Program-made: the position numbers and the translations under genes | Shown: positions 12,868-47,300 of the stretch, piece by piece | Numbering within the stretch: position 1 is the first letter of the stretch | Layout of the letters: each line of letters opens with the position of its first letter | Notes under the pieces: generated by a model | What the model was told of the DNA's origin: nothing | Databases searched by the model: none | What the model saw: the letters and a program-made list of their open reading frames with translations, nothing else | Source: Amphiscolops sp. MND2022 | Lineage: Eukaryota | DNA length: 64,000 nucleotides | Reading direction: 5' to 3' | Assembly (NCBI GenBank): GCA_964187785.1 | Contig: OZ076413.1 | Coordinates: 38,254,001 to 38,318,000 of the forward strand

Positions 12868-12878
12868 GGAGGAGGGAA
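12868..12878 (+). promoter_or_regulatory. Polypurine tract of the nested Gypsy
   Basis: GGAGGAGGGAA immediately before the 3' LTR. Confidence 0.85.
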
Positions 12879-13097
12879 TGAGACACAAGCATCGACATGT
12901 GTCAATCCAAAAAGTTTCTACGATAAACCTTGGCGAACGATGTGACACAAAACTACCTGCCAATGATCTTATGTTCTGAAGTCATGTACTTACAAGATAG
13001 ATACACATACGATGATAATGTACAGTTGCTTGATACAGTCTATGTTACTTTGAGTCATTCCATTTTAATTCACTCTTTGAACTTTTTCTGACTTACA
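12879..13097 (+). repeat. 3' LTR of the nested Gypsy (219 bp)
   Basis: Direct repeat of 7155-7373. Confidence 0.97.
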
Positions 13098-13116
13098 TTC
13101 GAGAGGCATGTGTACG

Positions 13117-25717: not shown

Positions 25718-26516
25718 CCCAGTGACACGAATCTTGGCACGCTTGCCAAGATGCATGGGTATGCTTGCCAAGATCTTGGCAAGATCTTGCCAAGATCTTA
25801 CCAAGGCTACCATGATCATGCAAGATCATGGCAAGGCTGACCATGCGTCTTACCAAGCGTACCAAGATTTTCCATGTATCTTACCAAGCTTTTCCATGTG
25901 TCTTGCCAAGCATACCAAGATTTTTCTATCCATCTTGCCAATCCAACCAGGATTTTTTCATGCGTTTTGCAAAGCATTCCAAGATTCAGTAATTAGAACC
26001 CGTTACCTCAATAGATCAGGTAATAGCATGATTTGCATAATTTTAAACAAATCATCGCTAGAAAAGTTGGTTTTCACACCGATATCGCAAACCCGCAAGT
26101 TGCAATAACTTGATTCGGAGTTTGCTTGGTATGATAAGTCATGTTAGTAGTAACAATGCCGTGCTCTCAAGTAACAAAACTCGGTCAATAGGTGCAGCGA
26201 ATTATTGAGCAAATTTTGGATAATTTTCAATTAAAAACTATTTTCAATCAATAAATATTATGTCCAAAGTTATTACAATGGCTAATTCAAAAATTGCAGA
26301 CGACAAAGAATTTTTGCGAAAAGAATAAATTATGCACAATTAATACCAGCTTACATGTCTTACCATGGTTATCTTGTCAAGATCTTGCCATGATCTTGCC
26401 ATGATCTTGGCAAGCGTTCCATGCATCATGTTTTTCCATGCGTCTTGGTAAGCCTACCATGCGTTTCCATGTTTTTCCAAGATCTTGGCAAGGCTACCAA
26501 GATTCGTGTCACTGGG
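25718..26516. mobile_element. Non-autonomous EnSpm/CMC-like DNA transposon (799 bp)
   Basis: 20-bp TIR CCCAGTGACACGAATCTTGG, 2-bp TSD (CG), and subterminal arrays of CAAGATCTTG motifs. Confidence 0.88.
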
Positions 26517-26866
26517 CGTCACTAGCGGTCCAACTACACATCTCTGCTGCCCAATAGCGAGGACGATTGCTAAAGCTTCGATCACAGTCATGTCAACGAA
26601 AGTATCCGTAAATTCAACAGTTTGATCATCGCTCAAAGTAACCGACCATCTGAGGACAAGACGGGTGACAATTGAGGATATGGGTATGGACAGCCTTCAA
26701 GCTACGTCTTTCATGGTCTTGGTACGGAACTAGCCGTACCACAGCCCATAAGATATGTTGCACGTGCTCACTTCCTCTGTCAACTCTAGGGTCTCTTGTG
26801 TCACAATAGCACGCTTTTCCAAAGACAACTGGATAATTCCGTATATCTTGCAAAACGGACATTGAG
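26517..26866 (-). pseudogene. Decayed ORF3 homolog: segment between the EnSpm-like element and the BEL element (copy at 44044-44393)
   Basis: LSDDQTVEFTDTFVDMTVIEALAIVLAIG...GP versus ORF3 LDDQQTRLYQEAMQKATISEILAYLMAVG...GP. Confidence 0.82.
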
Positions 26867-26871
26867 AATGG

Positions 26872-27118
26872 TGTTCACGCTAATATGACCTGAATGAACT
26901 TCATATTAAATACTACTTGAGTTTCTTCATGTATGACTTTCTAATTACTCTATGCCACGTTGCTTAACATGCTTGACTTCAATGAATAACCAATCATATT
27001 GCAATACGTAATTGTTCATGTGGCTTCTCATTCACTCATTTGTTTAGCGAGTCAAAGAAAACGTTTGGACTTGATTCAAACTTTCAATTTCTCTTTTTGC
27101 CACAATCGGCTCACAACA
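26872..27118 (+). repeat. BEL 5' LTR, copy 1
   Basis: TGTTC...CAACA; differs from 33592-33838 at five positions by my count. Confidence 0.96.
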
Positions 27119-27186
27119 CTTTTTGGTGCCGCGACCCGGGAAGCATTCTCGGAAATTCTTCAGCAGCTCTCTCGAACGACCAATTC

Positions 27187-30100
27187 ATGGCGGAGGAGGA
27201 GTTAACAGGCCAACAGGCACTGACAATGGCCGAACAAAAAGTTCGTCTCAGTCAACTCAAGAGAAGACGAGGTGGTCACAAATCGACTGTCACAAAACTT
27301 CTAGCTGACGCACAGGTTATTAGTCAAACCGGCTCTACAGATAGTGCCACAATCGATCGACTACAGCAAATTGTCGAACGAATTCGCCAGAAACAAAAGG
27401 ACATCGCAGCAATCAATGAGCGATTATTTGACATAATAGATTTGGTTGATCCAGATTCTATTGAGCAAGAAATGGAAGAAAATGAACGAGCTGCCGAGCT
27501 ACACGCTGAGGATTTGTGGAAGCTCGAAAAACTCATCGAAAACTTCACCAAGCCTCTCAAGCCGGTAATTCCTTTACAAACTACAAATTTATCTAGTCAA
27601 GCTACACCAAAGCGAGACAATGTCAAGCTCCCAAAACTAAACATACCTGACTTTGATGGTTGTTATAAGTCTTGGACTTCCTTTTGGGATCTATTTCAAA
27701 CGTCTGTGGACGCGAACAAGAGTTTGAGCAGAGCTGAAAAACTCAGTTACTTAAAATCTTTCTTGAAAGGTGAACCTGCTCGGATCACTTCAGCATTACA
27801 GATTACAGACGCTGATTATGACGTCGCATGCAAGGTACTACAGGAACGTTATAACAATGAACGATCAATTGTGAGAGCCCACACAGCAGCTTTATTGAAT
27901 TATCCTGCTCTTAAGCAAGAAAGTGCAGCTGCGCTCCGCAATTTACAGTGCAAAGTCAGTGAAAATCTGTTTGCGCTTGAAGCCAAGGGATTTTTTGAAA
28001 CTCGGAAGGATCCATTGGTACTCAATCTTGTAGCAGACAAGCATGATCATGAATCAAGCCGCCAGTGGGAACTCAGCCTCAGAGGCAACGACGTTCCAAC
28101 TCTCGATAAGCTGCTTACTTTCATTGATCACCGAGCAAGGGCACTTGAAATTCTACCTCGGAAGGAGAAACCCAGCATTACAGCAGCGTCACGACCCGCA
28201 GCAAGTGGCAAGCATATGAGCTACCATCAACAAGAACAGCCGTGTCCAGTGTGCAATGCGGGCGAACATCGCGATAAATTTTTAGCGATGACTTCAGAGC
28301 AAAGATACGCTGAAGTTTTGAGGTTGAAACTATGCGGGAATTGTCTGCAACCCGGTCATTTGAAAGCCAAATGTCCCAGCAAGCGCAACTGCAAAACATG
28401 TAACAGGCGTCATAATTCTCTATTACACAAAGAGAATACATCCAACACAGTGGGACATGCGCAGGTAATGCTCACTAATGATAATGTCCAAACCATTTTG
28501 GGGACTGTTGAGGTGTCTGAGCTTGGCAATGGGGGGAAATGGGTTCCAATGCGGGCCCTCTTAGATTCAGGATCCACCATTAACATGATCACGGAGCAAA
28601 CTACGACAACAATACGAGCAGTTGGACAAATGCACAGGTCCACATCTCAAAAGAGAGATCAACGTGCAATTACTGTGTAGACAATCTGCAACGGTGATTC
28701 CCACGAATCTAGCTGTGACCAAAACGATCACTGGTCTCTTACCAGCAACTAAAGTATGTTTGCCAGAGAATCAATTAACATGTTATAAAATGGCAGACCC
28801 TAATTTCGGAACTCCTGGTCCCATTGATCTCCTAATTGGTGCAAATCGTTATGATACAATCGTTCTCAGTGAACGAATCAAATTGCAAAACAGACTATTT
28901 TTGCGAAAAACTCTTTGTGGTTGGATGCTTTCTGGCTCACTATCTAGTCGTGTTAAAGGTGATCTTCAACGTTCCTTTCATGTAGCTATCGACCCATCAG
29001 TTAATCAATCTTCAGCTAATGATCCACTGAAAAGATTTCGAGAAATTGAGGATATCCCGAAGAAACGATTCCTAACACCGGAGGAAGAGCAGTGTGAGCA
29101 AATCTTCAAGGACACTACAAGGCGGTGTGCTGATGGCAGATTCTCAGTGTCTCTTCCCTTCAATCCTGAAGCTAAACCAGTCGGTGATAGTTTTCAGCAG
29201 GCCCAACGGCGTTTCTTGTCTCTTGAGAGGCGCCTAGAGAAGCAACCAATACTCAAGGAGCGATATTCCAAGTTCTTAAATGTATTCATTGATCTTGATC
29301 ATTTAGAGATCGTACCTGTGGATGAAATTGAAAAACCAGACAACGAGATGTTCTACTTGCCACACCATTGCGTTGAAAAGGAGCCAGCACAACGACAAAA
29401 GTGTGTGTGGTCTTCGACGCATCCGCCATTACCACTTCAGGCACATCTCTCAACGATATTCTGCTTACAGGTCCTCGACTTCAAGATGATCTTTTCGAAA
29501 TACTACTCAGATTTCGGTTTCATCGCATCGGACTCACAGCGGATGTAGAAAAAATGTACCAACAAATTGCTCTGAATTCACCTGACAAGGATTTCCATCG
29601 CATTTGGTGGCGAGAGCGAAAATCCGAATCACTCAAAACATACAGAATGACACGTGTAGCCTATGGGGTCAGATCTTCAGCGCATCACTCCACGCGGGCC
29701 CTTCAGGAGAAAGCTCATGTCGAGTATGATTCTCAAACAACGGCAGTGGTTCTGCGCGACTTTGCCGTAGACGACTTACTCACAGGAGCATCTAGTCTTG
29801 AAGACGCTCTTGAGCTCCAGAAAAGAATTACTACAGAGCTCAAAAAGACCGGGTTTAATCTCCGTAAATGGTCTTCAAGCAGTTCTGAATTCATGCACAG
29901 GTTGCCTGAAGCATTGCAAGAAGCACCCTCAGCTTATATTATTGAAGACAGGAATCATAGTATTAAAGTTCTAGGAATAAAATGGATTCCTCTCGGCGAT
30001 TACTTTTGCTTCACAACACGTGAATTTGAAGTTGACAACCCTACAAAACGTCAACTGTTGTCAAATATCGCCAAACTTTATGATCCTTTGGGGTGGTTAT

Positions 30101-32274
30101 CACCAGCAAAAATTAAATTCAAATTGCTAATCCAGGAGACATGGTTGGCTGGAGTTGGTTGGGATGAGGCCGTCGGAGACTCAATTGCTACGAAATGGCG
30201 CAGTGCCAAAGACATATTTAGCGATCTGGCTCAAATTAAACTTAACCGTTGTGTGCTACTCCCCGGAAAAATCGACACTACCGAGCTGCATGTATTTTGC
30301 GACGCGTCGGAACGTGCTTATGCTGCAGTAGTATACTCACGAATTCAAGACGATCTTGGCACCATCCGAGTTCAGCTCCTTTCGGCGAAATCCAAGGTTG
30401 CACCAATCAAAACAGTAAGCCTTCCACGGTTAGAATTGTGTGCAGCCGATCTGGGTGGTAAGCTAGTGACAATCTGCAAAGACGCACTGGAAAAGTTGGG
30501 TGTTCAAATTGATTCCATCCATGGTTGGACAGATTCCACAATTGTCTCGTCTTGGTTAGCATATTATCCATCGAATTGGTCAACCTTCGTTGGCAATCGA
30601 GATTCAAGCATTCAGAAGGCAATAGCCCCTGAGCAGTGGATGCACGTGGACTCGAGCAACAATCCTGCAGATTGCGCCTCTCGGGGTCTTCTGTCTCAAG
30701 AGTTGACAACTTTTCAGCTTTGGTGGGATGGACCAAGTTGGCTCACGACTGATCGCAACCAATGGCCACAGCAATCTGTCGTGCCCAAAATGATGCCACC
30801 TGAACGTCGAAAAAACAAAACAGTGGCGCTGGCAGTAGCCAGTCCTCCCGCCCCAGTGATTGATGTGGAGCGCTTTTCGCAGTGGAGAAGACTCATGGCG
30901 ACGACGAAAAGAATTGTCCTTCTGACAAGTAGAATCAAATCAAACGAAGAGTACTCAAAACTGGACGCCCACTTGAAGGCCCGTAACGTACTTTTGAAGC
31001 TTCATCAGCAGCATCTATTTGCGACCGAAATCAATCAAATCATCGGGCAAAGGCGCCATTCTTTGACAACGAAGATAACCTGCTCCGAGTTGGTGGCAGA
31101 TTATCGCAAAGCAATTACAATGAGGACATCAAATTTCCAATTATTGTCGCGGGAGATACCCATTTTGTAACCCTATTGATAAGGGATGCCCATCAAAACA
31201 CTCTGCATGGTGGACCGCAAGCAACGCTTTACAAACTCAGACAAGAAATTTGAATCACAGGTGGAGTCAAAACAGTGGCACGTATCATCAAGCAGTGCAT
31301 CACCTGTATACGCTTCAGCAAAAGCACCAACCAGCCTCAGATGGGCGACTTGCCAGCAGAGTGAATCTCCTCAACTAGAATTTTCACCAATGTCGGCCTG
31401 GACTTTGGTGGTCCAATACACATTAAGATCAGCAAAGCCAAGCTTGAGAAGGCCTACATTGCGCTCTCCATTTGCATGGCAACAAAGGCTATACACATAG
31501 AAGTTGTATCATCACTGACAACAGCAGCTTGCGTTGCAGCATTGCGCAGGTTCGTTGCACGACGAGGGCTCCCATCAGCTATCTTTTCCGACAATTGAGC
31601 AAATTTTATTGGTGCCAGAAGTGAGCTTTCAGCGCTTCAAAACATCCTAAACGACAAGTCGGCCAATTCTCTGACTCAGTTCTCCAACGCTAAAGGCACT
31701 GCATGGCTCATGATTCCACCCAGAGCACCGCACTTTGGAGGTCTATGGGAGGCCGGCATCAAGAAATGCAAAACGTTATTGCGCAAAATTGTTGGAGTTC
31801 AAACTTTAACCTTCAAGGCGCTTTCCACTGTGCTCACTCAAGTGGAAGCTGCTCTCAATTCACGCCCCATTAGCCCCATGTCTTCAGACCCGAATGCTTT
31901 GAACGTTTTGTCACCGGGACATTTCATCATTGGATCACCACTCGATGCATGGCCAGATGCAACTGATTCAAAGAACCTAACACTTAACCCTCAACAGCGT
32001 TGGAAGTTATTGCAGCAACTTTCACGAAGCAGAGTACCTTAACAACCTTCAACACAGAAGTAAATGGACAAAAGATGTGCCCAACTTCCAAGTTGGCGAT
32101 CTCGTCCTAGTTAAAGAGGACAACAATCCTCCACTTGTATGGCCACGCGCACGAATCACAAGGATCTTCGCAGGCAACGATGATGTCATTAGAGTGGTTC
32201 AATTGAGGACGGCAGCAGGAACCTACAATAGAACTGCCTCAAAATTGAGGCTTCTGAGTCCTACTGAAAACTGA
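27187..32274 (+). pseudogene. gag-pol: BEL gag-pol with multiple frameshifts and stops
   Basis: KLPKLNIPDFDG (DUF1759-like), CCHC knuckles, ALLDSGST, ADVEKMY, AVDD (from YVDD), FCDASERAYAA, PRLELCAA, GLDFGGP, GGLWEAGIK, DUF5641-like WPRARI. Confidence 0.96.
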
Positions 32275-32655
32275 AAATCGCAATCAGCAAAGTTGCTCTA
32301 AAATTGCAACAATCATCACCTCCTAGAGCTCAAATCGAAAAAAAACGCTACGTCATGACTTATCACGGACCTTATGGAAGCTCATGTATCCATTATTGAA
32401 GCCCTATAACTTACAAGCTTTATGGGCGAACACGGTTTATCATGCAATCTTGTTTTATCTTAAACAAATTTTTGTCGAATTATATTTATTACAGTCCTTC
32501 AAGCCAACTACTTTGGATGATTTATTCTACTCCTGCATACATGACTGGACTACCATGAATGAAACCAAACTCAATTGGCGTAATCTTCAATTGAAGTTCA
32601 TCAAATATCACAACAACAAATTAGCAAAAATCAAATTTGATTTCAAGCATACCCA

Positions 32656-33535
32656 TCACTTGCGGCCAAAGCGTTTCTTCCGAATGGACAGGCGATCACC
32701 CGTCCTGGGCTCTCCTCCTGGTCTGTACGAGCCCTTGCGACCACATTGCTCCCCGTCCATCTTGCACATGAACTTCTGACCCTTCAAATTGTTCTGCTGA
32801 AGTTTGTCCTCTTGTGGTAGGCAAGTGAAGGTTATCATGGACGTCACACCCAAAGACCACACTTGATGGGCGAAGCCCCACGGGATGTACACTGTGACTC
32901 CAGGAGTCTGCTCAAACCAGATGACATCGGTGGGCATCCTGTCCTTCACTTCTTGTGCCTATTTCAATCAGGGAGTAAGCAGTTTTCCTTGATTGAAGTC
33001 TCCTTCCAGCACGACGATTCTTTGCCAACCACCACAATTTTTCACCCTGTTGAAGCTGACTCATCACTGTCACTGCATTTGGACTTCCATCAAAGTGCCA
33101 CCCAGTGAAGGCGCAACCAGTGCTGAAGTATAATTGGGCATCATGCATTCTGTCGGGCGGCCGAACACAACGTTGGAGCAACTCGCAATAATCCTCGTCA
33201 TTTGAAGCAAGCACTGCAATTGGATAGCATTGCTTGATATATCGAGTATCAGGGTAATGCTGTGTCGATTCATTGGCAGTCCATTCAAATGCCTCACCCA
33301 ACTCTGTCACAGTCCGCGCTTCCTTGAAAATTCGCTCGGCATTCTCCTCTCGGTCACGCACCACCGGACTGACAATGGCTGTAGGCTCGTTTGGGCACAA
33401 TAGTACTTCTGCGACACTCTTGCAAGGAAGAACCTGATCTTCTCTCAATGACTCGTAACTATTCCGCAAGTACTGCTTTGCTGCCTCAAGACTGTTAAAC
33501 ATCCATCGATGTTGCCCCGATCTGGTATTCATCAT
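32656..33535 (-). pseudogene. JmjC-domain Fe(II)/2-oxoglutarate dioxygenase-like ORF (~292 aa if repaired), antisense inside the BEL element; one frameshift at ~32958
   Basis: FTGWHFDG, QGEKLWWL, then after a 1-nt frameshift EQTPGVTVYIPWGFAHQVWS. Ends in a basic tail, RKKRFGRK. Confidence 0.87.
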
Positions 33536-33591
33536 TCGTATCTGAAAGAAAAAAGAATTTGGGATATCACGAAATCCCAAGGCCGTCGGGA

Positions 33592-33838
33592 TGTTCACGC
33601 TAATATGACCTGAATGAACTTCATGTTAAATACTACTTGAATTTCTTCATGTATGACTTTCTAATTACTCTATGCCACGTTGCTTAACATGCTTGACTTC
33701 AATGAATAACCAATCATATTGCAATACGTAATTGTTCACGTGGCTTCTCATTCACTCATTTGTTTAGCGAGTCAAAGAAAACGTTTGGATTTAATTCAAA
33801 CTTTCAATTTCTCTTTTTGCCACAATCGGCTCACAACA
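33592..33838 (+). repeat. BEL 3' LTR, copy 1
   Basis: Direct repeat of 26872-27118, followed by the TSD AATGG. Confidence 0.96.
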
Positions 33839-33843
33839 AATGG

Positions 33844-35191
33844 TACGCTTCACTTCCCTGTTGACCTGGCATTCTGTACTGCTTCGCTTGTATCTTCGCA
33901 ATTCCTCGTGCGGTTCGGACATAGTGCGTGTTCCATATGGCGAGAACAAAAAATTGACATTTGCATTTCATGATCATAGTAAAGAACGTCCCCTAACGTC
34001 AGCTGGACGTTCCCTGTTGGCTCAGTGGACTCAAGGATACGGGATTTTGCCGCGAAGTATTCGGATGAGACAACGCAGTGCATTACGACGGGACTCGATG
34101 AAAACAGTGACAACCAGGAATCTGATGTAATCTTATGTGGATTCTTCATTTGTATTATACTACGTGTGTTTTCAAGAAGTGAGAAAAATGGAGTGAAACA
34201 CTTTCCTGGACACTTGAAATAAAACCTGTGAACCACCGAAGATTCGTTAAAATGTAAAAAGTCGCTTTGTTTCTTTGGTCTCTTGAAATTTTGTGTATTC
34301 TTCAACCCTGTAATGTGGACTCAGAAAAGCGTGTGAAGAATTCAGATAAAGGTTCAGGAATTGACAAAATACAGAAACAATTCACACATGCGTAGCTAGA
34401 TTATCAATAACATGAAAAATCACGCATCATTTTTCTGATTCCTTGAAAAATTCTTTTTCGCACTGCTAATATTTGTGAGTGAAATCTCTGCCAATTCGTT
34501 TGAAGTGCACATTTTCCTGAATTCTTAGAAACACATTTAGTTCGGTGCGGAACCCAACTTTTTCCAATACTTGAAGTTTGAAAAGCTACCACGATTGGCG
34601 CCGTAATGCCTCACATCACTTCTGACGAGTAGGAATGTGGCGACACAAAAGGTAAAATCTATCGTCCGCGCCTTGCACACTTCTGCTAGCTTGTAGAGGA
34701 ACTGCTGGAAGTCTTTATCACAATACATATATACCCACTGCAGGGAGAAACACAAAAATGGCTGTCGCGCCCACAAGACGCGACGAGTTTAATGTTTAAT
34801 CTATGGTAGCAATCACCTTTTAAATTGCCAAAAGTTACACTGGAACAAGTTGGGTAGTGTGGGCAGCAACTCCTCACAGGGCCATGGGTTCAATTACATT
34901 TGCCAACACCACCTTGTTAGGCGGTGGTTCTTTCAGCGAGCCCTCGAGCTCTGGTGAATCTATTATTCACCAGTATTTTGGCCATTTCACGACAGCGCGT
35001 GATCTCTGTCGTCGCATCTCAGGCCGGTAGGAAGAATCTACCATTACACAGTATCGCGCATGCTGTAGTCTATCTTTGGACAATGATAGGAACGATTTGA
35101 TCTCCGGAGCATACCAAGTGTGGTTTTCTCAAGTTTCCTTTCCCATCCTCTCAGGTTCGATTGTCACTGTTGCAGACAGTTGTCGACTACT
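33844..35191 (-). pseudogene. Decayed ORF3 homolog: SGNH-like segment (copy at ~51381-52728)
   Basis: Frameshifted blocks in the same order as ORF3: DRLQHARYCVMVDSS (vs DLLQKTRIALFVDST), PPNKVVLANVIEPMAL (vs PPVLVYSKVIDHLAL), QQFLYKLAEVCKAR (vs QQFLYLVLEAAYAR), YDHEMQMSI (vs YDYGMQMSI). Confidence 0.85.
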
Positions 35192-35193
35192 GT

Positions 35194-37601
35194 CCCAGTG
35201 ACACGAATCTTGGTAGCCTTGCCAAGATCTTGGAAAAACATGGAAACGCATGGTAGGCTTACCAAGACGCATGGAAAAACATGATGCATGCTACGCTTGG
35301 TAAGATCTTGGCAAGATCTTGGCAAGATCTTGACAAGCGTTCCATGTGGAAATGCTTGCCAAGATCATGGCAAGATCTTATCAAGATCTTGGCAAGCAAA
35401 TGATATGAAGATCTCTTCTTCAGAAAAACTGAAAAAAAACTTGTTTAACCCAATCTAATTGTCATTACATTTAGAAGAATTATGTTGCGCATATCAAATA
35501 TGATGGCAACATCTTAACAAGGCTAGAAGAACTAATTCTAAGTCAAAAAACGCAGTTTACGATCTACTCTAGGTATCGTTACACCTTGAACCAAAGTCAA
35601 TATGAATTAAGGATGTACCTAGAACGTTCCTAGAAACAAATCAGAGAGGGGAAGCTATAATTATCGCAAAGTTATTGGAACATTCAAGCTTTTTCCAGAT
35701 CAACACTACTGTTTTCGAGTATCGCAATTTTTGTTTTTTACGTAGTTTTTCATGTTTCATGTTTTGAAATGTTTCCAGGTACATGCGACAACTTCAGCAT
35801 TGTCCCCTGTAGTGCTTGAACTGCTCAGATCTCGAAGACTGCCATCATAACTCAACTCAACACAATTGTTTTTCGGGCTCTTGCAGATACTCTTCCATGT
35901 CGGGCGATGTTCGAGTTAAAAATGACAGTTTCGTTTGCATGCCTTTAGTATATGCTTGATATACATTCTGAGTGGCTGTTTTGGCGTGCTGTGAGAGTTT
36001 CGAAATGGTTTCGAAAGTTTCGAAATGAGAGTTTCTTTGCGCGCTCTGACGCTATTTTTGTTTTGGGATTGTGACAAGCAGATGCGCTGCCGATGATCGA
36101 TCCGGGTACTCGATGGCCTTCCAAGATGTTAAAATCTTTATGCTGGAAAATTTCCGTGGCGTTTTCAATAGGATTCTTTTTTGCTATAATGTGGCACTTA
36201 GTAATGTGGTATTCAAACGCTGGGCCGTGTTTTGAAGATGTTTTTTTTGTAAATTGTGTTCCTGCCCAATGGAACCCGTAGGCCTGGCAGTGCTAAAAAT
36301 GAGTCTTTGAAACCTTTGACTGGTTTGACTTTTTCTCGTTTGCAATTTTTTCATTGTTCTCTTTTGCTTTCTTCTCATTGCGAATGATTTGCTTCTCCAC
36401 TTTGTAGAAATTTTGGAAAATGTGTTCCTAACTTGAGAAAAACGTGCTTCGCAACGCTAGAGCGGAACATTCAAGCTTTTTCCAGATCAACACTACTCTT
36501 TTCGAGTATCGCCATTTTTTTATGTAGTTCTTCACAATTCATGTTTTCGAATGTTTCCAGGGACACGAAACAACTTATGCAGCCTCGTCGCCTGTGGTGA
36601 TTGGACTTCTCGGATCTCAGCGTCTTTCAGCAGTACTCATTATTTGTTGGATGGTAAGTTTCTCTCTTGTTTTTGAAGACGTTTTTTTGTAAATTGCGTT
36701 CCTGCCCAATGGAACCCGTAGGCCTGGCAGAGTCTTTGAAACCTTTGACTAGTTCGATTTTTTTCGTTTGCAAGTTTTTCATTGTTCTCTTTTGCTTTCT
36801 TTTCATTTCGAATGATTTGCTTCTCCACTTCGTAGAAAATTTGGAAAATGTGTTCCTAACTTGAGAAAAATGTACTTCGCAACGCTAGAGCGGAACATTC
36901 AAGCTTTTTCCAGATCAACCACTACTCTTTTCGAGTATCGCATTTTTTTATGTAGTTCTTCACAATTCATGTTTTGAAATGTTTCCAGGTACATGCGACA
37001 ACTTCAGCATCGTCCCCTGTAGTGCTTGAACTGCTCAGATCTCGAAGACTGCCATCAGAACTCATTCTTTGTTTAATGGATAATATATCTCCAGCTTTCG
37101 AAGTTTTGCAAATTGTGTTGCTGTCCGTGGAAGAAACAAACTCCATTTGTCAAACTTTCGCATGATTTTCCAATTTTCTTTGGTGCTGCAACTACAATAC
37201 TTACTGTTATAATATTTGAAAATCGAAACAATTAAATTTTGGTTATTCCAGTTTTCGAAAATATTCAATATAAAATCTCAAATGGCTCAAAAACACACGT
37301 AGAACGTATTAAGCTTTGCAAGTTACAACGAAAATCTTGGAATGCTTTGCAAAATGCATGAAAAAATCCTGGTTGGATTGGCAAGATGGATAGAAAAATC
37401 TTGGTATGCTTGGCAAGACACATGGAAAAGCTTGGTAAGATACATGGAAAATCTTGGTACGCTTGGTAAGACGCATGGTCAGCCTTGCCATGATCTTGCA
37501 TGATCATGGTAGCCTTGGTAAGATCTTGGCAAGATCTTGCCAAGATCTTGGCAAGCATACCCATGCATCTTGGCAAGCGTGCCAAGATTCGTGTCACTGG
37601 G
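35194..37601. mobile_element. Non-autonomous EnSpm/CMC-like element (2408 bp), same family as 25718-26516 but inverted and with a different interior
   Basis: Same 20-bp TIR, 2-bp TSD (GT), subterminal motif arrays, and internal repeats starting at 35677, 36464 and 36892. Confidence 0.88.
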
Positions 37602-37603
37602 GT

Positions 37604-38800
37604 GTCTGTTCCTCTTATGCCTGGCTACCTATCGGGACATAGCGGGGCACTTTCTTCCTGTCATACAGGCATCCCGAGGAGATCACAGGTGCGGCTTCCC
37701 AGACCCGTGCGAGTGCCGACTCACCAGGGACCCGGAGGCATTCTGTTACACTGGCTAACTTGGAGCTGTACGATCTCCGAGAAAGGATTACTCCTAGCTT
37801 GTCTATGATCAGTGGATGTCACTTATTTTGGGAGCATGAATCAGTACTGCCTCCCCCGGTGACATTCGCGGCTATGGTTCCCCCTGTTACCCTATCGGCT
37901 GTGCGCAGGGGGACCTATGGATACCAAGGACTTCATTTGTGCTGTACCGTTTTGTCGAAGGGGGACGACTGCTAAATCTGTCAATACTGTTAGGAGGTGG
38001 TTCCCTCTCATCCTTAGACGACGACCAACCCTTGAAAACCAATTAGAGGTGTTTGGGGGAGTGTTTCGGGAACGCGATGGTGTTACGGAGCCCTCGAGCT
38101 GCGACACCGGAGTGCGTACTGTGCCTTTTTGTAACAGGGTCTGAATAGCCGAGACTTGCTGAAAAAATGATTGAACAAACCTTTGCGATTCAGAGTAATT
38201 GGCAACAGTGTGCAGCGCTGCAATGACTGCTCAATGATTGGGCGATGTGACATGTTTGATGTAGGAGCATTCACCGGTGGTCATATCGACTGCCAATGCA
38301 GTAACTCACTGGTGGATAGTAAAATGCCGGTTGGGGCAAATGATGTGGCTGTTGTTGGATTGTACAAGGTGGTTGCGCAGAGAGGTGCCATGCGGAGAAG
38401 GATAGGTTCAACGCACAGAGAGAGTTCATGCTCCAGCACGATATTATTTGTGGGACGATACGACACAGAAGCGCGGTCGTCTAGGAAGTGATGTGTGAGA
38501 TCGTAGTTCACACATTTTTCCGGCATGCGAGTGACCTTGCATATCCTCCCACATTAGCGGTTATGGCGAGGACCATGAAAGTCAACCATGAGAGCAAGTT
38601 TGTTGGGCAAGGGCAGCAGTAATTCCGGTTACCGCCGCGGGAGAGATTACATGTCTTTCGTAAATTTTCATCCAAGAACTTAGCATGGGAGATTCGCTGC
38701 ACGCGTATCTGACCATAGGCTCTGGGTGTTTGAACCGAAGATGCAGACTGTGAAGCAGTCACCTGCTGTGTCACTTGGCATTGGCGAAGACTGCGTCAAA
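37604..38800 (-). pseudogene. Decayed ORF3 homolog: N-terminal segment (copy at ~55141-56336)
   Basis: NYDLTHHFLDDRAS (~38470-38510) versus ORF3 GYDLTHNLIDHRS, followed by a T/P/S-rich low-complexity region as in ORF3. Confidence 0.55.
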
Positions 38801-40859
38801 TCGCAAATACAATCAACTTGTCTAACAAGAGTGAAGCTGAGCTGGATTTCCACACTAGTCTTAGCAGGAGAATCCGTTCTAGCATGATGATGATAATTAA
38901 GTTGCAGAGATCTTTGAGAACGTCTTCAGATGTTCGTTGTAACCACCTCATGAAGTCCTCGGCTATCCAAGGAAACAATGCGTCGCTCTTATTAGCAAGA
39001 TGTGATGATTTTAAATGGGATTTTGGGCCAGGGAGGGATGTAGTTATGTACGGAATTCGCCTAATCGGGGACGTAGTGCAAGTATTTCATCCGCACCGCA
39101 CTCGCGCAAAATGTAGCGCAGGGCAGAAGAAATTGTCTCCAAGTCTGCAGTTCATCATATGGCAAGGTGCCTTCTGCCTGCAGAAAGTCGATCAACCGTG
39201 CGTGATGATATCAACAAGATTGCTCCAAAGCACGCCAGGACATTGAACTTCCCTTCCTGGCTCGTCGTACGCGGATGGCTGAATGGCCGCGCAATGTCCT
39301 CGTAGGACATCTAGGTCCTGCCGAACGGATCTTTGAAAGGTCTCATTGTCGATGTTGGAATTCGCCTAAATACCTAACGTCCCAAGAGCTGCTTTAGTAG
39401 GAAACACGGATGCGTGGAGATGTGGGAAAATTGGATTTTGATATTTATACCACCAAAACTTAGTGTTTCCGAATACCAAACCACCATATGATTACGTTGT
39501 CAGTTTTGGACGTCCGTAAACGTTCCAAACAACTATACAGATGGCAAGGATCCATCAACGCGTCCATATATAGCCAAAGTCAACTCCAGCATTTGATCAT
39601 AACTAGTCCTTTCCTTGAGCAGGACAAGAGGCCTTACCCAACAAGGAAGGTCACAATGTTTTTAGTTTCGCCTCGGCACAGACGTTTTCAGTACCCTACA
39701 ATCCTGTATAGATATTTCTGCCCGGATAAATAGCCGATGTACTGAGTGTCCTCAGTAGTACCACCTGAGAGCACTCCTTGGTGTCCAATCTCGAGTGTAC
39801 CCCGAGGCGTGTCGACTGTCATTGCGCAAACGCAATCACGCAACACAAAAGTCAGAGTGAGAAAAGTGTTTGCGGTTGCGCCTTGAGCTGTACTGGTGAG
39901 GACTTTCAGGATGGTCGGAAACAGAAAAAACTTTAGCTTCAGGCATCGAGGTCGTAGTCGTGTCCGAATTCGATATTTGCTGGTTTTGCTAGCAGTGGTC
40001 GGCGGCAGTCATCAAAACCGACCACGCGGGCAATCCCTTCTGCTACCACGCTGCTTGCTGGCCCTACTGGTGCGTTGAGAAAGAAGACTTCCACCTCTAC
40101 CTGTTTTGGGTATAGGTTGGGTACCAGGAGGTGTAAGGGGAGCTACAAGATCAGCCGCGCAGGTCAGGCTTTTGGCAGCGGCAAAATACTATTCAAATGT
40201 TGTCGGCACCGTCCGAGGCCGAATGGTTAATTTCTTCAACGAATCAGTTAAGGAAGGGTTGGCCAGGAAAGGAGCTGAGGTGCCGACAAGTGATGACAAA
40301 CTACCCTCGCCTTCAGATTTAATGGAGGTCAATACCAGACCTTGGGGACTCTGAAACTTGGTCGAGAATCTCAGCGTGGGTCAGAACTGCGTCCATCTCC
40401 TCCTTGTCACTGATCTTCGGAGTTGCATCATCGCCCGCATCGGACGGAGAGTTACCAACTTGATGGAACTGTAAGCGACTGCCACTCTTCCGGATGTGGG
40501 TGTGCAGGCATATTTCCCTCCAATGCCGTCTTCTCGAAGGCAATGATGCAATCGATGCCTCTGGGAACAATTGTCCAGTTTTACGCAAAGGTTGTATCCT
40601 GTCATTGCCTATTTCATCCACAGTGAACCCAGGATCCGCATCCATTTTACCACAATCTCGCCACTGTCGGTAGTGCAGCAAACTCTGTTTGCCTGAAGCG
40701 ATGTGGCTTCAACCGTTCAGAATAGAGTTTTTGTCCTGTATCTAAAAGGTGAAGACGTCCTTCTTACAAGGTATGAACCACTATGTGATCTATGTGAGGT
40801 CCACACCACGCCCTCGCCACGCCTCAGCTTGGGCGAACCTTTCTGAGGCACATCCAGCA

Positions 40860-41450
40860 GAATAGCCAAACCCGGTACGCACGCGCGGTCAACTTTTATT
40901 TCCAAAGGATGTGGTGCCGCGCCAATCAATGAATTTCTGCTATGTCAGAGGAATATTTTTTCGGCTCCTCTGGTCAACAAAAAACGTGAAAAAGCCGTTT
41001 CAAAAACAATTTACCCCCTGATCACCCTATCTAGGTGTTCCGATCACAGACCCGCATCCTCTGTGAACGAAACACGAGAAGCAAGGTTAACAAGGTGCGG
41101 TTCTGAGGTCAATCTAGATATGGTCGCTGCGTCATATTCCTTGTGGAAGGCCACAATGAAAAGAATTGCAGGGTGGGCTGCCCGATCGGAAGCGACATGA
41201 GTACAACGTTGTCTTCTAAGGGCACAGTATGCCCTCGCGGGCGGACGCACTTCCTCCTCGCAAACCCATGTGTTCCATCATTCCAAACATTACGCAGAAT
41301 AGCGGACCCGCGCAGTCTGATCTTGCCGTTTAATCCTTGGTCGGGCACTCCCGAGCAAAAAGGCACTTGTCCACAAAGAGAACATGCTTCCATGGGAACT
41401 CGAGCTTGACGTGCTGAAGCGAACCGTGCATTGGGTGCGCCCATAACCGA
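40860..41450 (-). pseudogene. Decayed homolog of giant-Gypsy ORF2, the macrodomain protein (copy at ~58396-58986)
   Basis: GSAILRNVWNDGTHGFAR (vs GNRPLRRTIWNDRKSIFAH), LMSLPIGQP (vs LISQPKIRP), AFSRFLLTRGAEKIF (vs ATIRYIIREYGQETIF), in the expected order upstream of the ORF3 homolog. Confidence 0.5.
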
Positions 41451-42757
41451 CACATTGCATTGCCCAAAAGTGGTGGTAGCACTCCCTGTGAGATGCCTCG
41501 TGGCTCTTTATTGGGTATAAATGGCGGAGGGTTGCTGCGCCTTCGGTCGCTTGCGCTGCAGTTAGCGCGTGGTGAAGCGCAACTATTCCACCGTTGGAGG
41601 CTCAGTGAGTTAAATCAACAGTTCCCGGCGCAATATATGGTCTCTTTAGCATCCGATTGCAATCAGTTTTAAACGGGCTAGTCATCAAAGTGAAGGCCTT
41701 TTCAGGATTATCCCTCAAAGACTCAAATTCGCCTTTAATGATAATATTTTCACACTCTGACTTTGCGTTTGTGACTATCCTGTCGATGATAATTGGGGTT
41801 CGTTACAAAGTAGTCACTGACCACCGTTACAATTTTTAAGAGCCTCTTTCAATTAGCATTAGTCTTTTTTATCATTTTGCAAAAATCATGAAGACAAAAG
41901 CCTGCGGTGTAACTAATGGATGATGGTCACCTTCCCACAAAATGAAAGAAATTTTCGATCTTCCCCAAGGTAATGAAATAGTTTTCTCAATCCAAATCCA
42001 TGCTATTGAATGTAATTTTGTTAAACTCGAATAGCAATGAAAGAAAACTAGATCAACTTTCAGCAAACGCATTGTAGAAAAGTTCTCATAAGGTTGTATA
42101 TGGGTTAAATATATAAGCCTCAAGCGAATGGTTCCAGTGACTGAATCAAAACCATTCTAATTGAAAGAAATATGTTTGCAATGAAAGGTCATAGTTTGTG
42201 CCGTGGTCATCCCTACTGTCTAGGGAGCTTGAAGAACCGTCCCTAGGACGGGGATGATGGTTGGAATTGACCGAATTTGGATTCGCAATGGTTTCTACCT
42301 TCGGTGTTCCCGCTTAGTCTACTGGACCTTGAGTCCACATTTGTCCCAAACCTTTTGTCCACCGGCTTTAATTCGAACGCGTTTCCTTTTACCTTGCTAG
42401 TTGACTGTATTACTCTAATTGCAAAATTCAGCACCGGTTTACATGACATCATAACTATAATTCAACTATTATGAAATAACAGAACTGAAATGAGTGTAAT
42501 CCTGAATAAATATGGCAAAGTTATGCTTAATGCAAATGAGTTTATAGTTTATGGGACCGGTGGTCTATCCAGCCTATAATGGCAAAACTTCTGGGGGAAT
42601 GGGTAGGTTGCTGTGTTCGTTGGGGACAATTTGGTACCTGTTCCCATCGTAGACGGCAGCCTGCGACAATTTAATTTCATGTGAATGTTTTTGAAACATC
42701 GATTGCACTTGAAAGAATCGTTTGACTTTATCACTTTCAATTAATCAATCATTTCAG

Positions 42758-43053
42758 GCTGTGAAAAACTGGAAGGAGCTCAAATTTCGGTTTGTTTGCA
42801 CAATGCAAAAAACTGCACAACGTGCGATTCTGTCGGAACAGCACCAAGAGGTGAACGTGTTACTGTCCTATGCCCTGAGAAACCGAAAGGAAAGTTTCTA
42901 CAAGTTGGACACATGTTAGGAGACGTGAAATACTGCAACATTCAAGTCTTTGGGGAGTTACCAGGAGTGTACGATAATACGGATTCTGGTGATTGTATTT
43001 CATCTTACAACTTTCTGACCGAGGCTACTTTGGTTGATAAACCTAACTGGTAG
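42758..43053 (+). CDS. Host exon: C-terminal half of an F-type lectin-like domain, terminal exon
   Basis: catttcag| acceptor in phase 1. Reads CEKLEGAQISVC...C..C...VLC...GKFLQV...YCNIQVFG, paralogous to 23671-23894. Confidence 0.65.
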
Positions 43054-43671
43054 AGCAGAAGATACTAGACGATTTTTTTTTTAAAAAAAAGAAAACGCTG
43101 AGAAAATTTGAGTTCTCAAAACTTCAACAAAACTGCTTCAAAAGACAGAAAATATGCAATTTAACCTTAGGAATTTTGACCTCAAAACAAAAACTACTGG
43201 TGTAACGAATAAAAATTTGAGATACTTTTGCTTTCATGTATAATAAAATTACGAAATGTTGCGCTTCGAAACTTTTCGTTTGTCAAATTGAGTGTCTTCA
43301 CGAAACCCAAGTGAATCTTAAATTTAAAACCTGTTTCATTTTAGATAATGACGTGCCGACTTCGACAGAATTCTACTTCACGGATGTTTGGCTCGGGACA
43401 TCTACCGAACAAACTTTTTTCAGATCATTTGTAGGAAAGTAACTTAAATCACAGCTACTATAACTTGAACTGTCCTTAATTGTTTTTACAACGAGTTTAT
43501 TTATATTCCCCTCCACGTTTGGATAATAAAAACCTTGATTCTGGTAGTTGAAATTGATTGCAAATATTAGAGTTAGACTGGAATGATGTGAAAGAGAACT
43601 TCTCTAACAATTCACTTTTTGTCTATACCAAAGAGGTCACAAGTTGTACTAAGTGTCAAAAACGTTTACGC

Positions 43672-44043
43672 TAGTAGTAACAATGCCGTGCTCTCAAGTA
43701 ACAAAACTCGGTCAATAGGTGTAGCGAATTATTGAGCAAATTTTGGATAATTTTCAATTAAAAACTCTTTTCAATCAATAAATATTATGTCCAAAGTTAT
43801 TACAATGGCTAATTCAAAAATTGCAGACGACAAAGAATTTTTGCGAAAAGAATAAATTATGCACAATTAATACCAGCTTACATGTCTTACCATGGTTATC
43901 TTGTCAAGATCTTGCCATGATCTTGCCATGATCTTGGCAAGCGTTCCATGCATCATGTTTTTCCATGCGTCTTGGTAAGCCTACCATGCGTTTCCATGTT
44001 TTTCCAAGATCTTGGCAAGGCTACCAAGATTCGTGTCACTGGG
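43672..44043. mobile_element. Orphan right half of the 799-bp EnSpm-like element, created by the duplication breakpoint
   Basis: Only the right TIR (...GTGTCACTGGG at 44043) is present; the sequence starts at the duplication junction. Confidence 0.9.
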
Positions 44044-44398
44044 CGTCACTAGCGGTCCAACTACACATCTCTGCTGCCCAATAGCGAGGACGATTGCTAA
44101 AGCTTCGATCACAGTCATGTCAACGAAAGTATCCGTAAATTCAACAGTTTGATCATCGCTCAAAGTAACCGACCATCTGAGGACAAGACGGGTGACAATT
44201 GAGGATATGGGTATGGACAGCCTTCAAGCTACGTCTTTCATGGTCTTGGTACGGAACTAGCCGTACCACAGCCCATAAGATATGTTGCACGTGCTCACTT
44301 CCTCTGTCAACTCTAGGGTCTCTTGTGTCACAATAGCACGCTTTTCCAAAGACAACTGGATAATTCCGTATATCTTGCAAAACGGACATTGAGAATGG

Positions 44399-47300
44399 TG
44401 TTCACGCTAATATGACCTGAATGAACTTCATATTAAATACTACTTGAGTTTCTTCATGTATGACTTTCTAATTACTCTATGCCACGTTGCTTAACATGCT
44501 TGACTTCAATGAATAACCAATCATATTGCAATACGTAATTGTTCACGTGGCTTCTCATTCACTCATTTGTTTAGCGAGTCAAAGAAAACGTTTGGACTTG
44601 ATTCAAACTTTCAATTTCTCTTTTTGCCACAATCGGCTCACAACACTTTTTGGTGCCGCGACCCGGGAAGCATTCTCGGAAATTCTTCAGCAGCTCTCTC
44701 GAACGACCAATTCATGGCGGAGGAGGAGTTAACAGGCCAACAGGCACTGACAATGGCCGAACAAAAAGTTCGTCTCAGTCAACTCAAGAGAAGACGAGGT
44801 GGTCACAAATCGACTGTCACAAAACTTCTAGCTGACGCACAGGTTATTAGTCAAACCGGCTCTACAGATAGTGCCACAATCGATCGACTACAGCAAATTG
44901 TCGAACGAATTCGCCAGAAACAAAAGGACATCGCAGCAATCAATGAGCGATTATTTGACATAATAGATTTGGTTGATCCAGATTCTATTGAGCAAGAAAT
45001 GGAAGAAAATGAACGAGCTGCCGAGCTACACGCTGAGGATTTGTGGAAGCTCGAAAAACTCATCGAAAACTTCACCAAGCCTCTCAAGCCGGTAATTCCT
45101 TTACAAACTACAAATTTATCTAGTCAAGCTACACCAAAGCGAGACAATGTCAAGCTCCCAAAACTAAACATACCTGACTTTGATGGTTGTTATAAGTCTT
45201 GGACTTCCTTTTGGGATCTATTTCAAACGTCTGTGGACGCGAACAAGAGTTTGAGCAGAGCTGAAAAACTCAGTTACTTAAAATCTTTCTTGAAAGGTGA
45301 ACCTGCTCGGATCACTTCAGCATTACAGATTACAGACGCTGATTATGACGTCGCATGCAAGGTACTACAGGAACGTTATAACAATGAACGATCAATTGTG
45401 AGAGCCCACACAGCAGCTTTATTGAATTATCCTGCTCTTAAGCAAGAAAGTGCAGCTGCGCTCCGCAATTTACAGTGCAAAGTCAGTGAAAATCTGTTTG
45501 CGCTTGAAGCCAAGGGATTTTTTGAAACTCGGAAGGATCAATTGGTACTCAATCTTGTAGCAGACAAGCATGATCATGAATCAAGCCGCCAGTGGGAACT
45601 CAGCCTCAGAGGCAACGACGTTCCAACTCTCGATAAGCTGCTTACTTTCATTGATCACCGAGCAAGGGCACTTGAAATTCTACCTCGGAAGGAGAAACCC
45701 AGCATTACAGCAGCGTCACGACCCGCAGCAAGTGGCAAGCATATGAGCTACCATCAACAAGAACAGCCGTGTCCAGTGTCCAATGCGGGCGAACATCGCG
45801 ATAAATTTTTAGCGATGACTTCAGAGCAAAGATACGCTGAAGTTTTGAGGTTGAAACTATGCGGGAATTGTCTGCAACCCGGTCATTTGAAAGCCAAATG
45901 TCCCAGCAAGCGCAACTGCAAAACATGTAACAGGCGTCATAATTCTCTATTACACAAAGAGAATACATCCAACACAGTGGGACATGCGCAGGTAATGCTC
46001 ACTAATGATAATGTCCAAACCATTTTGGGGACTGTTGAGGTGTCTGAGCTTGGCAATGGGGGGAAATGGGTTCCAATGCGGGCCCTCTTAGATTCAGGAT
46101 CCACCATTAACATGATCACGGAGCAAACTACGACAACAATACGAGCAGTTGGACAAATGCACAGGTCCACATCTCAAAAGAGAGATCAACGTGCAATTAC
46201 TGTGTAGACAATCTGCAACGGTGATTCCCACGAATCTAGCTGTGACCAAAACGATCACTGGTCTCTTACCAGCAACTAAAGTATGTTTGCCAGAGAATCA
46301 ATTAACATGTTATAAAATGGCAGACCCTAATTTCGGAACTCCTGGTCCCATTGATCTCCTAATTGGTGCAAATCGTTATGATACAATCGTTCTCAGTGAA
46401 CGAATCAAATTGCAAAACAGACTATTTTTGCGAAAAACTCTTTGTGGTTGGATGCTTTCTGGCTCACTATCTAGTCGTGTTAAAGGTGATCTTCAACGTT
46501 CCTTTCATGTAGCTATCGACCCATCAGTTAATCAATCTTCAGCTAATGATCCACTGAAAAGATTTCGAGAAATTGAGGAAATCCCGAAGAAACGATTCCT
46601 AACACCGGAGGAAGAGCAGTGTGAGCAAATCTTCAAGGACACTACAAGGCGGTGTGCTGATGGCAGATTCTCAGTGTCTCTTCCCTTCAATCCTGAAGCT
46701 AAACCAGTCGGTGATAGTTTTCAGCAGGCCCAACGGCGTTTCTTGTCTCTTGAGAGGCGCCTAGAGAAGCAACCAATACTCAAGGAGCGATATTCCAAGT
46801 TCTTAAATGTATTCATTGATCTTGATCATTTAGAGATCGTACCTGTGGATGAAATTGAAAAACCAGACAACGAGATGTTCTACTTGCCACACCATTGCGT
46901 TGAAAAGGAGCCAGCACAACGACAAAAGTGTGTGTGGTCTTCGACGCATCCGCCATTACCACTTCAGGCACATCTCTCAACGATATTCTGCTTACAGGTC
47001 CTCGACTTCAAGATGATCTTTTCGAAATACTACTCAGATTTCGGTTTCATCGCATCGGACTCACAGCGGATGTAGAAAAAATGTACCAACAAATTGCTCT
47101 GAATTCACCTGACAAGGATTTCCATCGCATTTGGTGGCGAGAGCGAAAATCCGAATCACTCAAAACATACAGAATGACACGTGTAGCCTATGGGGTCAGA
47201 TCTTCAGCGCATCACTCCACGCGGGCCCTTCAGGAGAAAGCTCATGTCGAGTATGATTCTCAAACAACGGCAGTGGTTCTGCGCGACTTTGCCGTAGACG

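Follow-up and report, generated by a model that had tools for sequence, protein, structure and literature searches.

Organization of the element and its antisense ORF

We analysed a 64,000-nucleotide window of DNA from Amphiscolops sp. MND2022 (GCA_964187785.1, contig OZ076413.1, positions 38,254,001 to 38,318,000) and found at 26872-33838 a BEL/Pao LTR retrotransposon that carries a JmjC-like ORF on the minus strand between pol and the 3′ LTR. The two LTRs, at 26872-27118 and 33592-33838, are 247 bp long, run TGT..ACA and differ at 5 of 247 positions (98% identity). They are flanked by a 5-bp target-site duplication (TSD), AATGG, at 26867-26871 and 33839-33843. A primer-binding-site-like stretch starting TGG lies at 27124-27141, 5 nt after the 5′ LTR, but the matching tRNA was not identified. 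Rfam and tRNA scans of the window and of four loci found nothing.

The gag-pol region (27190-32274, plus strand) is of the BEL/Pao type, with precomputed Pfam hits on this same DNA to a DUF1759 gag, a Pao_retrotransp pol (PF05380), an integrase and a DUF5641 region. It is decayed and split into at least 6 open pieces, and against the most intact copy (L004, another copy of the family) it shows 3 in-frame stops and 33 gapped codons. A search with pol returned thousands of PF05380 proteins, of which the closest named hits are arthropod BEL/Pao polyproteins (arachnid and insect) at about 40% identity.

The JmjC gene is represented by two minus-strand ORFs, 32912-33598 (228 aa from a GTG inside the LTR edge; the first ATG is at 33535, 56 nt inside the 3′ LTR edge) and 32656-32949 (97 aa). 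The N-terminal part (32965-33537, start MMNTRSG..) contains TGWHFD, with the 2-oxoglutarate (2OG)-binding Thr and the HxD iron ligands, and GEKLWW, with the 2OG-binding Lys. It is identical to the protein P0005 and 98% identical to P0001, and its start is conserved in the relatives P0057 and L009. The C-terminal part (32656-32958) contains the third iron ligand (..GFAHQV..), a C-terminal helix and the basic RKKRFGRK tail. The motifs listed in the earlier note, including PGVTVYIPWGFAHQV, are all present, but its statement that the ORF has only one frameshift needs correction. Besides a 1-nt length difference within 32962-32964, the window copy has an adjacent stop codon at 32961-32959 in the frame that the intact copies use, and the window copy is a pseudogene. 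The stop is shared with the tandem duplicate described below but is absent from the allelic haplotig L001, which has the length difference only; both lesions are absent from L002, L003 and L004, further copies of the family.

The spacer between the pol stop and the JmjC stop (32275-32655) is the likely 3′ UTR of the JmjC gene and has two AATAAA hexamers on the minus strand, at 32526-32521 and 32490-32485. These lie 130 and 166 nt downstream of the stop in all three independent copies, and their role as poly(A) signals is inferred. A 54-nt leader (33538-33591) separates the JmjC ATG from the LTR and contains a purine-rich tract (33544-33557) on the sense strand of the element, the function of which is inferred. 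On the antisense strand of the 3′ LTR, a TATA-like TATTTAA (33632-33626) lies 97 nt upstream of the JmjC ATG and is followed by an initiator-like TCATATT (33608-33602). A promoter role is again only inferred, and both the TATA-like and AATAAA motifs could be due to chance, such promoter-like motifs being common in AT-rich DNA.

The window contains a second copy of the whole element at 44399-51375, with the JmjC remnant at 50196-51081 on the minus strand. Because it is 99.6% identical and has the same flanks and TSD, we attribute it to a 17.5-kb tandem segmental duplication, not to a new insertion; the duplication is absent from haplotig L001.

Distribution and conservation of the cargo gene

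To determine whether the ORF belongs to the element family, we searched for further copies and homologs. Three independent insertions in assembly ERZ25074608 have different TSDs (AATGG, ACGAT and TCTTG) and the same layout. All 6 copies examined of the window element's family (family A), representing these 3 independent loci, carry the ORF, and one of them, L002, has an intact 291-codon ORF. Only this one of the three independent insertions keeps an open frame. A word-indexed homology search found only the near-identical cluster, and just 3 proteins with the family alignment, whereas an exhaustive phmmer search exposed the wider family, with 28 representative homologs at E<=1e-3. Most homolog clusters are multi-copy on different large contigs. 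A search for related loci found nothing in viral contigs and only three spurious 31-residue matches in JGI metagenomes.

Distant homologs (20-45% identity) occupy the same antisense position in a second BEL/Pao family from other assemblies (family C, loci L011/L012), the pol of which is 50% identical and the TSD of which is AAGCT. They also occur in a Ty3/gypsy-like lineage found in two assemblies, represented by the elements L010 (TSD CATT) and L013 (TSD AAGGG), in which the gene is not next to an LTR. Two further homologs (a paralogue in L007 and a relic in L009) have no recognisable pol within 10 kb. In family C, a 56-nt GT..AG intron restores the conserved PG|EAIYLP..GH motif, and six distinct cluster members end in the same read-through. 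Such an intron can survive retrotransposition only if the gene is antisense to the genomic RNA and is expressed as its own spliced mRNA.

The catalytic residues are almost invariant across about 70 relatives (H 56/58, D 57/58, K 56/57, T/S 56/58 and the second H 34/38) and are conserved over 55-80% sequence divergence. Basic tails (at least 9 K/R in the last 35 residues) occur in 13 of 18 sequences of 240 aa or more. By contrast, within-family dN/dS values neither support nor refute selection: they were 0.50-0.86 for JmjC, 0.56-0.86 for pol and 0.35-0.47 for gag, the copies being only 3-4% diverged, with much of that representing post-insertion decay. The evidence for constraint comes from the deep conservation. 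The JmjC tree is a star with long branches and does not show whether the BEL and gypsy-like cargo share one capture.

Similarity to JmjC oxygenases

Because Pfam and PDB sequence searches with the two broken window pieces alone gave only a weak JmjC hit (E=0.047, 14.6 bits, for the C-terminal piece) and cupin-type phosphoglucose isomerase hits, we turned to the natural intact paralogue P0002. For this protein, Pfam PF02373 covers 1-109 of 114 profile positions at E=5.4e-4, although the score of 20.8 bits is below the gathering cut-off of 24 bits. Overall, 13 of 16 family members hit PF02373, with a best E-value of 3.6e-7, and no domain other than JmjC/cupin was found by Pfam in any of the 16. 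In a profile search of PDB, the family matched PHF8 (1.5e-7), ceKDM7A (3e-7), KDM7A (1e-5), JMJD6 (4e-5) and KDM2A (3e-4), with the Thr, HxD, Lys and His residues aligned; the T of TGWHFD and the K of GEKLWW align with those of YTDFHID and GEKIFY in PHF8. The AF2 model of P0002 (pLDDT 83.9, pTM 0.80) has a predicted JmjC double-stranded beta-helix fold, and all 50 listed top PDB Foldseek hits are JmjC or related oxygenases, at probability 1.00 and TM about 0.5.

The top 7 PDB profile hits are PHF8, ceKDM7A and KDM7A, followed by KDM2A, but the margin over JMJD6 is only about 2 orders of magnitude in E-value. The structural alignments with the KDM7/PHF8/KDM2 demethylases show only about 10-18% identity, and the protein of about 290 aa lacks the reader or targeting modules (PHD, CXXC, F-box/LRR, Tudor, chromo) of the known KDM2/7 enzymes. 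The JmjC-only hydroxylases JMJD6, JMJD5/KDM8, TYW5, FIH, JMJD7 and B. subtilis YxbC are small single-domain proteins with the same fold, Thr/Lys 2OG binding and similar Foldseek scores. JMJD6 and YxbC are significant sequence hits, but the profile scores of this group are lower than those of the KDM7 group, and no specific subfamily signature was shown. Foldseek hits in a viral library include JmjC proteins of giant viruses; virus-encoded 2OG oxygenases, including those of Leptopilina boulardi filamentous virus and the AlkB domains of plant RNA virus replicases, share the fold class but are not retroelement proteins and show no close sequence relationship.

Interpretation and possible function

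Taken together, the window holds a decayed copy of a BEL/Pao family whose members carry an antisense accessory gene for a protein of about 290 aa, consisting of a single JmjC-type Fe(II)/2OG oxygenase domain followed by a disordered basic tail that looks like a nuclear localisation signal. The structural reading of the earlier note, an LTR retrotransposon with an antisense JmjC dioxygenase gene between pol and the 3′ LTR, is supported, and we consider it very likely that the gene is element-borne cargo, which was copied with the element in several independent transpositions. It is probable that the protein is or was functional for the element. We infer that the gene is transcribed from its own promoter as an mRNA of about 1.1 kb, for which the evidence is indirect: the retained intron, the TATA-like and AATAAA motifs, and homologs that sit as complete ORFs on contigs of 1.0-1.8 kb. 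In the BEL families the promoter would lie in or next to the antisense 3′ LTR, but the antisense LTR promoter inferred in the earlier note cannot be the general rule given the gypsy-like relatives. We further infer that the protein enters the nucleus and acts as a KDM7/PHF8/KDM2-like methyl-lysine demethylase that removes repressive histone marks laid on the element. In the absence of expression, localisation or activity data this counter-silencing role, also proposed in the earlier note as one possibility, is the leading inference but taken alone is less likely than not, and we assign the explanation as a whole a probability of roughly 0.5.

The closest alternative, which we consider less likely, is that the protein is a hydroxylase that modifies a host factor, Gag, integrase or an RNA to help replication, nuclear import or evasion of a restriction factor. 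Single-domain JmjC proteins of this size are usually protein or RNA hydroxylases, the Thr/Lys pattern is shared with them, and fold scores do not separate the two groups. However, the best profile matches are consistently to the KDM7/PHF8 subfamily, with a ..AHxVLS.. motif resembling ..IHAVLT.. of PHF8, and the conserved nuclear-type basic tail fits a chromatin role, although JMJD6 is nuclear too. It appears improbable that the unit acts mainly as an antisense RNA, through dsRNA/siRNA or transcriptional interference, or that the protein dampens or targets the element for self-restraint or host benefit. Antisense transcripts are known for LTR elements, antisense ORFs in plant elements have no assigned function (PMC7264820), and the JmjC mRNA would be fully complementary to the genomic RNA. 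Yet an RNA-only role explains neither the conservation of five catalytic residues and an open frame of about 290 codons at 20-45% identity across families nor the retained intron that preserves the reading frame.

A passenger origin, in which a host JmjC fragment was transduced once and is now decaying, or in which the ORF belongs to a nested transposon, would fit the broken window copy, the stops or frameshifts in two of the three independent family A insertions and a within-family dN/dS close to that of decaying pol. This is very unlikely and already largely refuted because position and orientation are kept in BEL families with pol only 50% identical and in the gypsy-like lineage, intact ORFs exist in several clusters (P0002, P0057, P0058, P0062, P0027, P0028 and P0031), no repeats or TSD bound the ORF inside the element, and our homology searches found no non-element paralogue closer than the element copies. 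We likewise rejected a chance ORF and a host gene flanked by chance by LTRs.

Antisense ORFs between pol and the 3′ LTR are known from plant and fungal LTR retrotransposons (maize Grande gene23, rice RIRE2, Silene Retand and PvRetro13; PMC7264820). They have the same position and orientation, are present in most copies of a family and have their own promoter, and Grande gene23 encodes a nuclear protein. Those ORFs have no recognisable similarity to known proteins and occur in plant Ty3/gypsy lineages, whereas here the ORF is a recognisable enzyme, the hosts are animals and the carriers are BEL/Pao and a gypsy-like lineage. The retroviral genes HTLV-1 HBZ and HIV-1 ASP are likewise minus-strand genes starting close to or in the 3′ LTR, with spliced forms and nuclear regulators as products (PMC7264820); HBZ, of exogenous vertebrate retroviruses, is a bZIP factor and not an enzyme. 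The logic of a mobile element acquiring host chromatin machinery is known from DNMTs in dinoflagellate and charophyte retrotransposons (PMC5890265), MBD in arthropod Copia (PMC6673714) and chromodomain, PHD and SET fusions (bioRxiv 10.1101/2021.11.30.470311). Most of these are in-frame fusions in the sense polyprotein, in contrast to the separate antisense gene found here, and none of the papers we could search mentions a JmjC domain in an LTR element.

It is possible, though doubtful on present evidence, that LTR retrotransposons of two superfamilies maintain a dedicated nuclear JmjC histone demethylase, expressed from its own antisense transcription unit, against silencing based on H3K9, H3K27 or H4K20 methylation. 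This would be the first enzyme assigned to an antisense accessory gene of an LTR retrotransposon and the first element-encoded eraser of histone marks. Hosts silence transposable elements largely by histone methylation, and elements are known to borrow readers (chromodomains, PHD, MBD) and writers (DNMT, SET), but an element-encoded eraser of the JmjC class has not, as far as we could find, been described. The antisense ORFs of LTR retrotransposons have been an open problem for decades because none resembled a known protein, whereas here one is a recognisable enzyme with natural intact copies. The retained intron also shows why such cargo must be antisense, because only in that orientation can a gene keep its own promoter, intron and poly(A) signal through reverse transcription. 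If the protein is an active demethylase, it would be a new kind of move in the host-transposon arms race and a compact, naturally minimal JmjC enzyme; if it is a hydroxylase, it would point to an unknown host or element target that matters for retrotransposition.

Organization of the element and its antisense ORFs

Positions 26872-27118 and 33592-33838 of the window are a pair of 247-bp direct repeats that start with TGT, end with ACA and differ at 5 positions, and the pentamer AATGG flanks both outer edges. Between these LTRs, the plus strand carries a broken gag-pol. This very DNA was recovered as loci L005/L006 of the ENA assembly ERZ25074608 (contig ctg185617, 600,073 bp), and its precomputed Pfam hits are DUF1759 (BEL/Pao gag) and Pao_retrotransp, whereas better-preserved copies add Integrase_H2C2 and DUF5641. 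The element is a BEL/Pao LTR retrotransposon of 6,967 bp, and its nearest named pol relatives are arthropod BEL/Pao polyproteins at about 40% identity.

Two ORFs lie on the minus strand between the end of pol (32274) and the 3′ LTR. One runs 32912-33598 (228 aa from an upstream GTG, with the first ATG at 33535, 56 nt from the LTR edge) and the other runs 32656-32949 (97 aa). They contain the motifs TGWHFD, GEKLWW, PGVTVYIPWGFAHQV and a terminal RKKRFGRK, as the earlier note had listed. Aligning all copies showed that the window copy is broken by a 1-nt length difference from the intact copies within 32962-32964 and, immediately beside it, by a stop codon (32961-32959) in the frame that the intact copies use. 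The allelic haplotig (locus L001, contig ctg185604) has only the length difference. The claim in the earlier note that the ORF has only one frameshift therefore slightly understates the damage, but the rest of that observation is confirmed.

The window contains a second copy of the element (44399-51375), which is not a new insertion but part of a 17.5-kb tandem segmental duplication (26145-43672 and 43672-61206) at 99.7% identity. The alternative haplotig L001 has a single copy, and the duplication is therefore either haplotype-specific or an assembly artefact. For reasons that we cannot explain, the two alleles of the element (26872-33838 in the window and 9695-16562 in L001) differ by 1.4-1.6% in gag-pol, with a dN/dS of about 1, but the flanking DNA of the same haplotigs differs by only 0.5-0.65%; gene conversion between copies is one possibility. 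Downstream of the element, two tandem units of about 430 bp at 86-87% identity were found at 36230-37083, with their duplicate at 53766-54641. Elsewhere in the window, an apparently intact 1782-aa Ty3/gypsy gag-pol ORF (gag, RVP, RVT_1, RNase H and integrase; 7402-12750, plus strand) sits between minus-strand pieces of another gypsy-like element (84-6407 and 13065-18761), namely PR-RT-RH at 13065-16604, an integrase-like ORF at 4470-6407 and a 975-aa ORF with no Pfam hit at 84-3011. This arrangement looks like a nested insertion, and none of these carries a JmjC gene.

Similarity of the antisense gene product to JmjC oxygenases

Pfam and PDB searches with the broken window pieces alone gave almost nothing. 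However, the same assembly holds a naturally intact 291-codon copy (locus L002), of which the protein P0002 covers 281 aa. P0002 matched Pfam JmjC over 109 of 114 profile positions at E=5.4e-4, just under the gathering score. An exhaustive phmmer search of 1.84 billion representatives found 28 relatives at 20-45% identity, and of 16 aligned members, 13 hit Pfam JmjC with a best E of 3.6e-7. A profile of the family hit solved structures of PHF8 (1.5e-7), C. elegans KDM7A (3e-7), human KDM7A (1e-5), JMJD6 (4e-5) and KDM2A (3e-4), with the 2OG-binding Thr and Lys and the HxD...H iron triad aligned.

An AlphaFold model of P0002 (pLDDT 83.9, pTM 0.80) predicted a double-stranded beta-helix core, a C-terminal helix and a disordered basic tail, and every top Foldseek hit of this model in the PDB is a JmjC enzyme (KDM7A, TYW5, KDM2A, PHF8, JMJD6, JMJD5, FIH and YxbC). 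Across about 70 family sequences, the five catalytic positions are kept in 34/38 to 57/58 of the sequences that cover them, and 13 of 18 sequences of 240 aa or more end in a lysine/arginine-rich tail. No family member carries a name in any source database.

Occurrence of the gene in other copies and other element families

To determine whether the gene is cargo of the element or an accident, we compared the copies of the window's BEL/Pao family (family A) in ERZ25074608. The element occurs at three independent loci with different 5-bp duplications, which are AATGG (the window, its tandem duplicate and haplotig L001), ACGAT (L002) and TCTTG (L003/L004, which are allelic), and every copy has the JmjC gene in the same place and orientation. 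Of the family A copies, only L002 keeps the frame open, whereas L003 has one stop and L004 has two stops and a 4-nt insertion. L004 also has about 357 extra bases in the gag region compared with its allele L003, and two very long plus-strand ORFs with no Pfam hit (more than 970 aa and 1426 aa; L004 1-6718) lie upstream of its copy of the element. Pairwise dN/dS of the JmjC frame among independent copies was 0.50-0.86, compared with 0.56-0.86 for pol and 0.35-0.47 for gag. The copies differ by only 3-4% and their LTR pairs by 1-2.5%; much of the divergence is therefore post-insertion decay, and the test cannot discriminate.

The main result is the wider distribution of the gene. Distant homologs sit in the same antisense position in other elements. 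The homolog P0042, which has about 30% identity to P0002 and belongs to a 90%-identity cluster of 19 sequences on many large contigs, lies antisense, about 94 nt inside the 3′ LTR of a BEL/Pao element (family C) in the assemblies ERZ25878734 and ERZ25071366. That element has LTRs of about 220 bp and the target-site duplication (TSD) AAGCT, and its pol is 50% identical and its gag 37% identical to family A. In addition, a BEL pol 49% identical to family A (P0075) and a JmjC protein of a further homolog cluster, that of P0019 (P0065), are both recorded on a contig of exactly 377,359 bp, which is probably a third BEL family with JmjC cargo.

The homologs P0010 (same genome as the window) and P0027 (assembly ERZ26859043) lie antisense just downstream of a pol with Ty3/gypsy-type Pfam signatures (RVT_1, RT_RNaseH, RT_RNaseH_2, Integrase_H2C2 and rve) and no Pao domain. 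These gypsy-like elements are 11.7-12.8 kb, LTR-bounded and TSD-flanked (CATT and AAGGG), and they are related to each other (RT 64% and integrase 48% identical). Each carries three further sense-strand ORFs after the JmjC gene (7077-9738, minus strand, in locus L010 and 6090-8683, minus strand, in locus L013), which are homologous between the two assemblies (36-55% identity) and have no Pfam hits. The largest have a single hydrophobic segment towards the C-terminus, many cysteines and N-glycosylation motifs, so they may be env-like.

Two homologs could not be placed in an element. The JmjC paralog P0012 (within locus L007, 1-9645), which is 44% identical to the gypsy-borne P0010, exists in 5 near-identical copies on short, low-coverage repeat contigs of 9-14 kb at about 18x coverage. 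No recognisable pol is present; there is a 77%-identical 99-bp direct repeat 6.76 kb apart, and a neighbouring ORF has a very weak SET-domain hit (E=0.048). The other is a relic of a family-A-like JmjC gene in ERZ26859043 (locus L009, 10001-10863), which has the iron-ligand His replaced by Tyr, an in-frame stop and a frameshift. No pol lies within 10 kb of this relic, which is next to a 3-copy tandem repeat of 1.58 kb (11471-16235) and a host HMG-CoA synthase exon. The JmjC tree is too poorly resolved to distinguish one capture from several or from exchange between elements. Overall, the cargo is retained across families whose pol has diverged by half, and it occurs in two LTR superfamilies.

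Indications of expression and possible function

In family C, the coding sequence is interrupted after ..VHVQKPG by 56 nt that begin with GTAAT and end with a pyrimidine-rich tract and CAG. Removing them joins PG to EAIYLP...GH, which reproduces the conserved PGxxxYxPxxx(A/G)H motif of the family with exact spacing and keeps the frame open to a basic tail. Six distinct cluster members from different contigs end with the same read-through into this stretch, and a canonical short intron is the simplest reading. An intron can persist in a retroelement only if it lies on the strand opposite to the genomic RNA, which explains the orientation and implies a separately transcribed, spliced mRNA. In family A, the antisense 3′ LTR has a TATA-like TATTTAA 97 nt upstream of the ATG, followed by an initiator-like motif, and two AATAAA hexamers lie 130 and 166 nt after the stop. 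These motifs fit an mRNA of about 1.1 kb but could be chance. Many homologs occur as complete ORFs on contigs of 1.0-1.8 kb from read-archive assemblies, which is the size expected for such a transcript, although we could not establish whether those runs are RNA.

Antisense additional ORFs between pol and the 3′ LTR are well known in plant elements (Grande, RIRE2 and Retand), but none resembles a known protein (PMC7264820), and HTLV-1 HBZ is the retroviral precedent for a 3′-LTR-driven antisense gene. Elements are also known to have captured DNMTs (PMC5890265), an MBD (PMC6673714) and chromo, PHD and SET domains (bioRxiv 10.1101/2021.11.30.470311). Antisense accessory ORFs and captured chromatin genes are thus both known, whereas full-text literature searches turned up no JmjC gene in an LTR retrotransposon.

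The window copy itself is a dead copy, and the interest lies in the family, in which a retrotransposon-borne, antisense, single-domain JmjC oxygenase gene with a complete catalytic set and a basic tail is maintained in several element lineages. RNA-only or passenger explanations fit the deep conservation of catalytic residues and the frame-preserving intron poorly. The main alternative to a demethylase is a protein or RNA hydroxylase of the JMJD6, JMJD5, FIH or TYW5 kind, which is favoured by the small size and the absence of any reader domain, and the fold scores cannot separate the two possibilities. We infer that the protein is nuclear and uses Fe(II) and 2OG. Its sequence is closest to the KDM7/PHF8/KDM2 group, whose members remove H3K9me2/1, H3K27me2, H3K36me2 or H4K20me1, and animal hosts silence elements by histone methylation. 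The leading, still tentative hypothesis is therefore that these elements encode a counter-silencing demethylase acting on the element's own chromatin or more widely.
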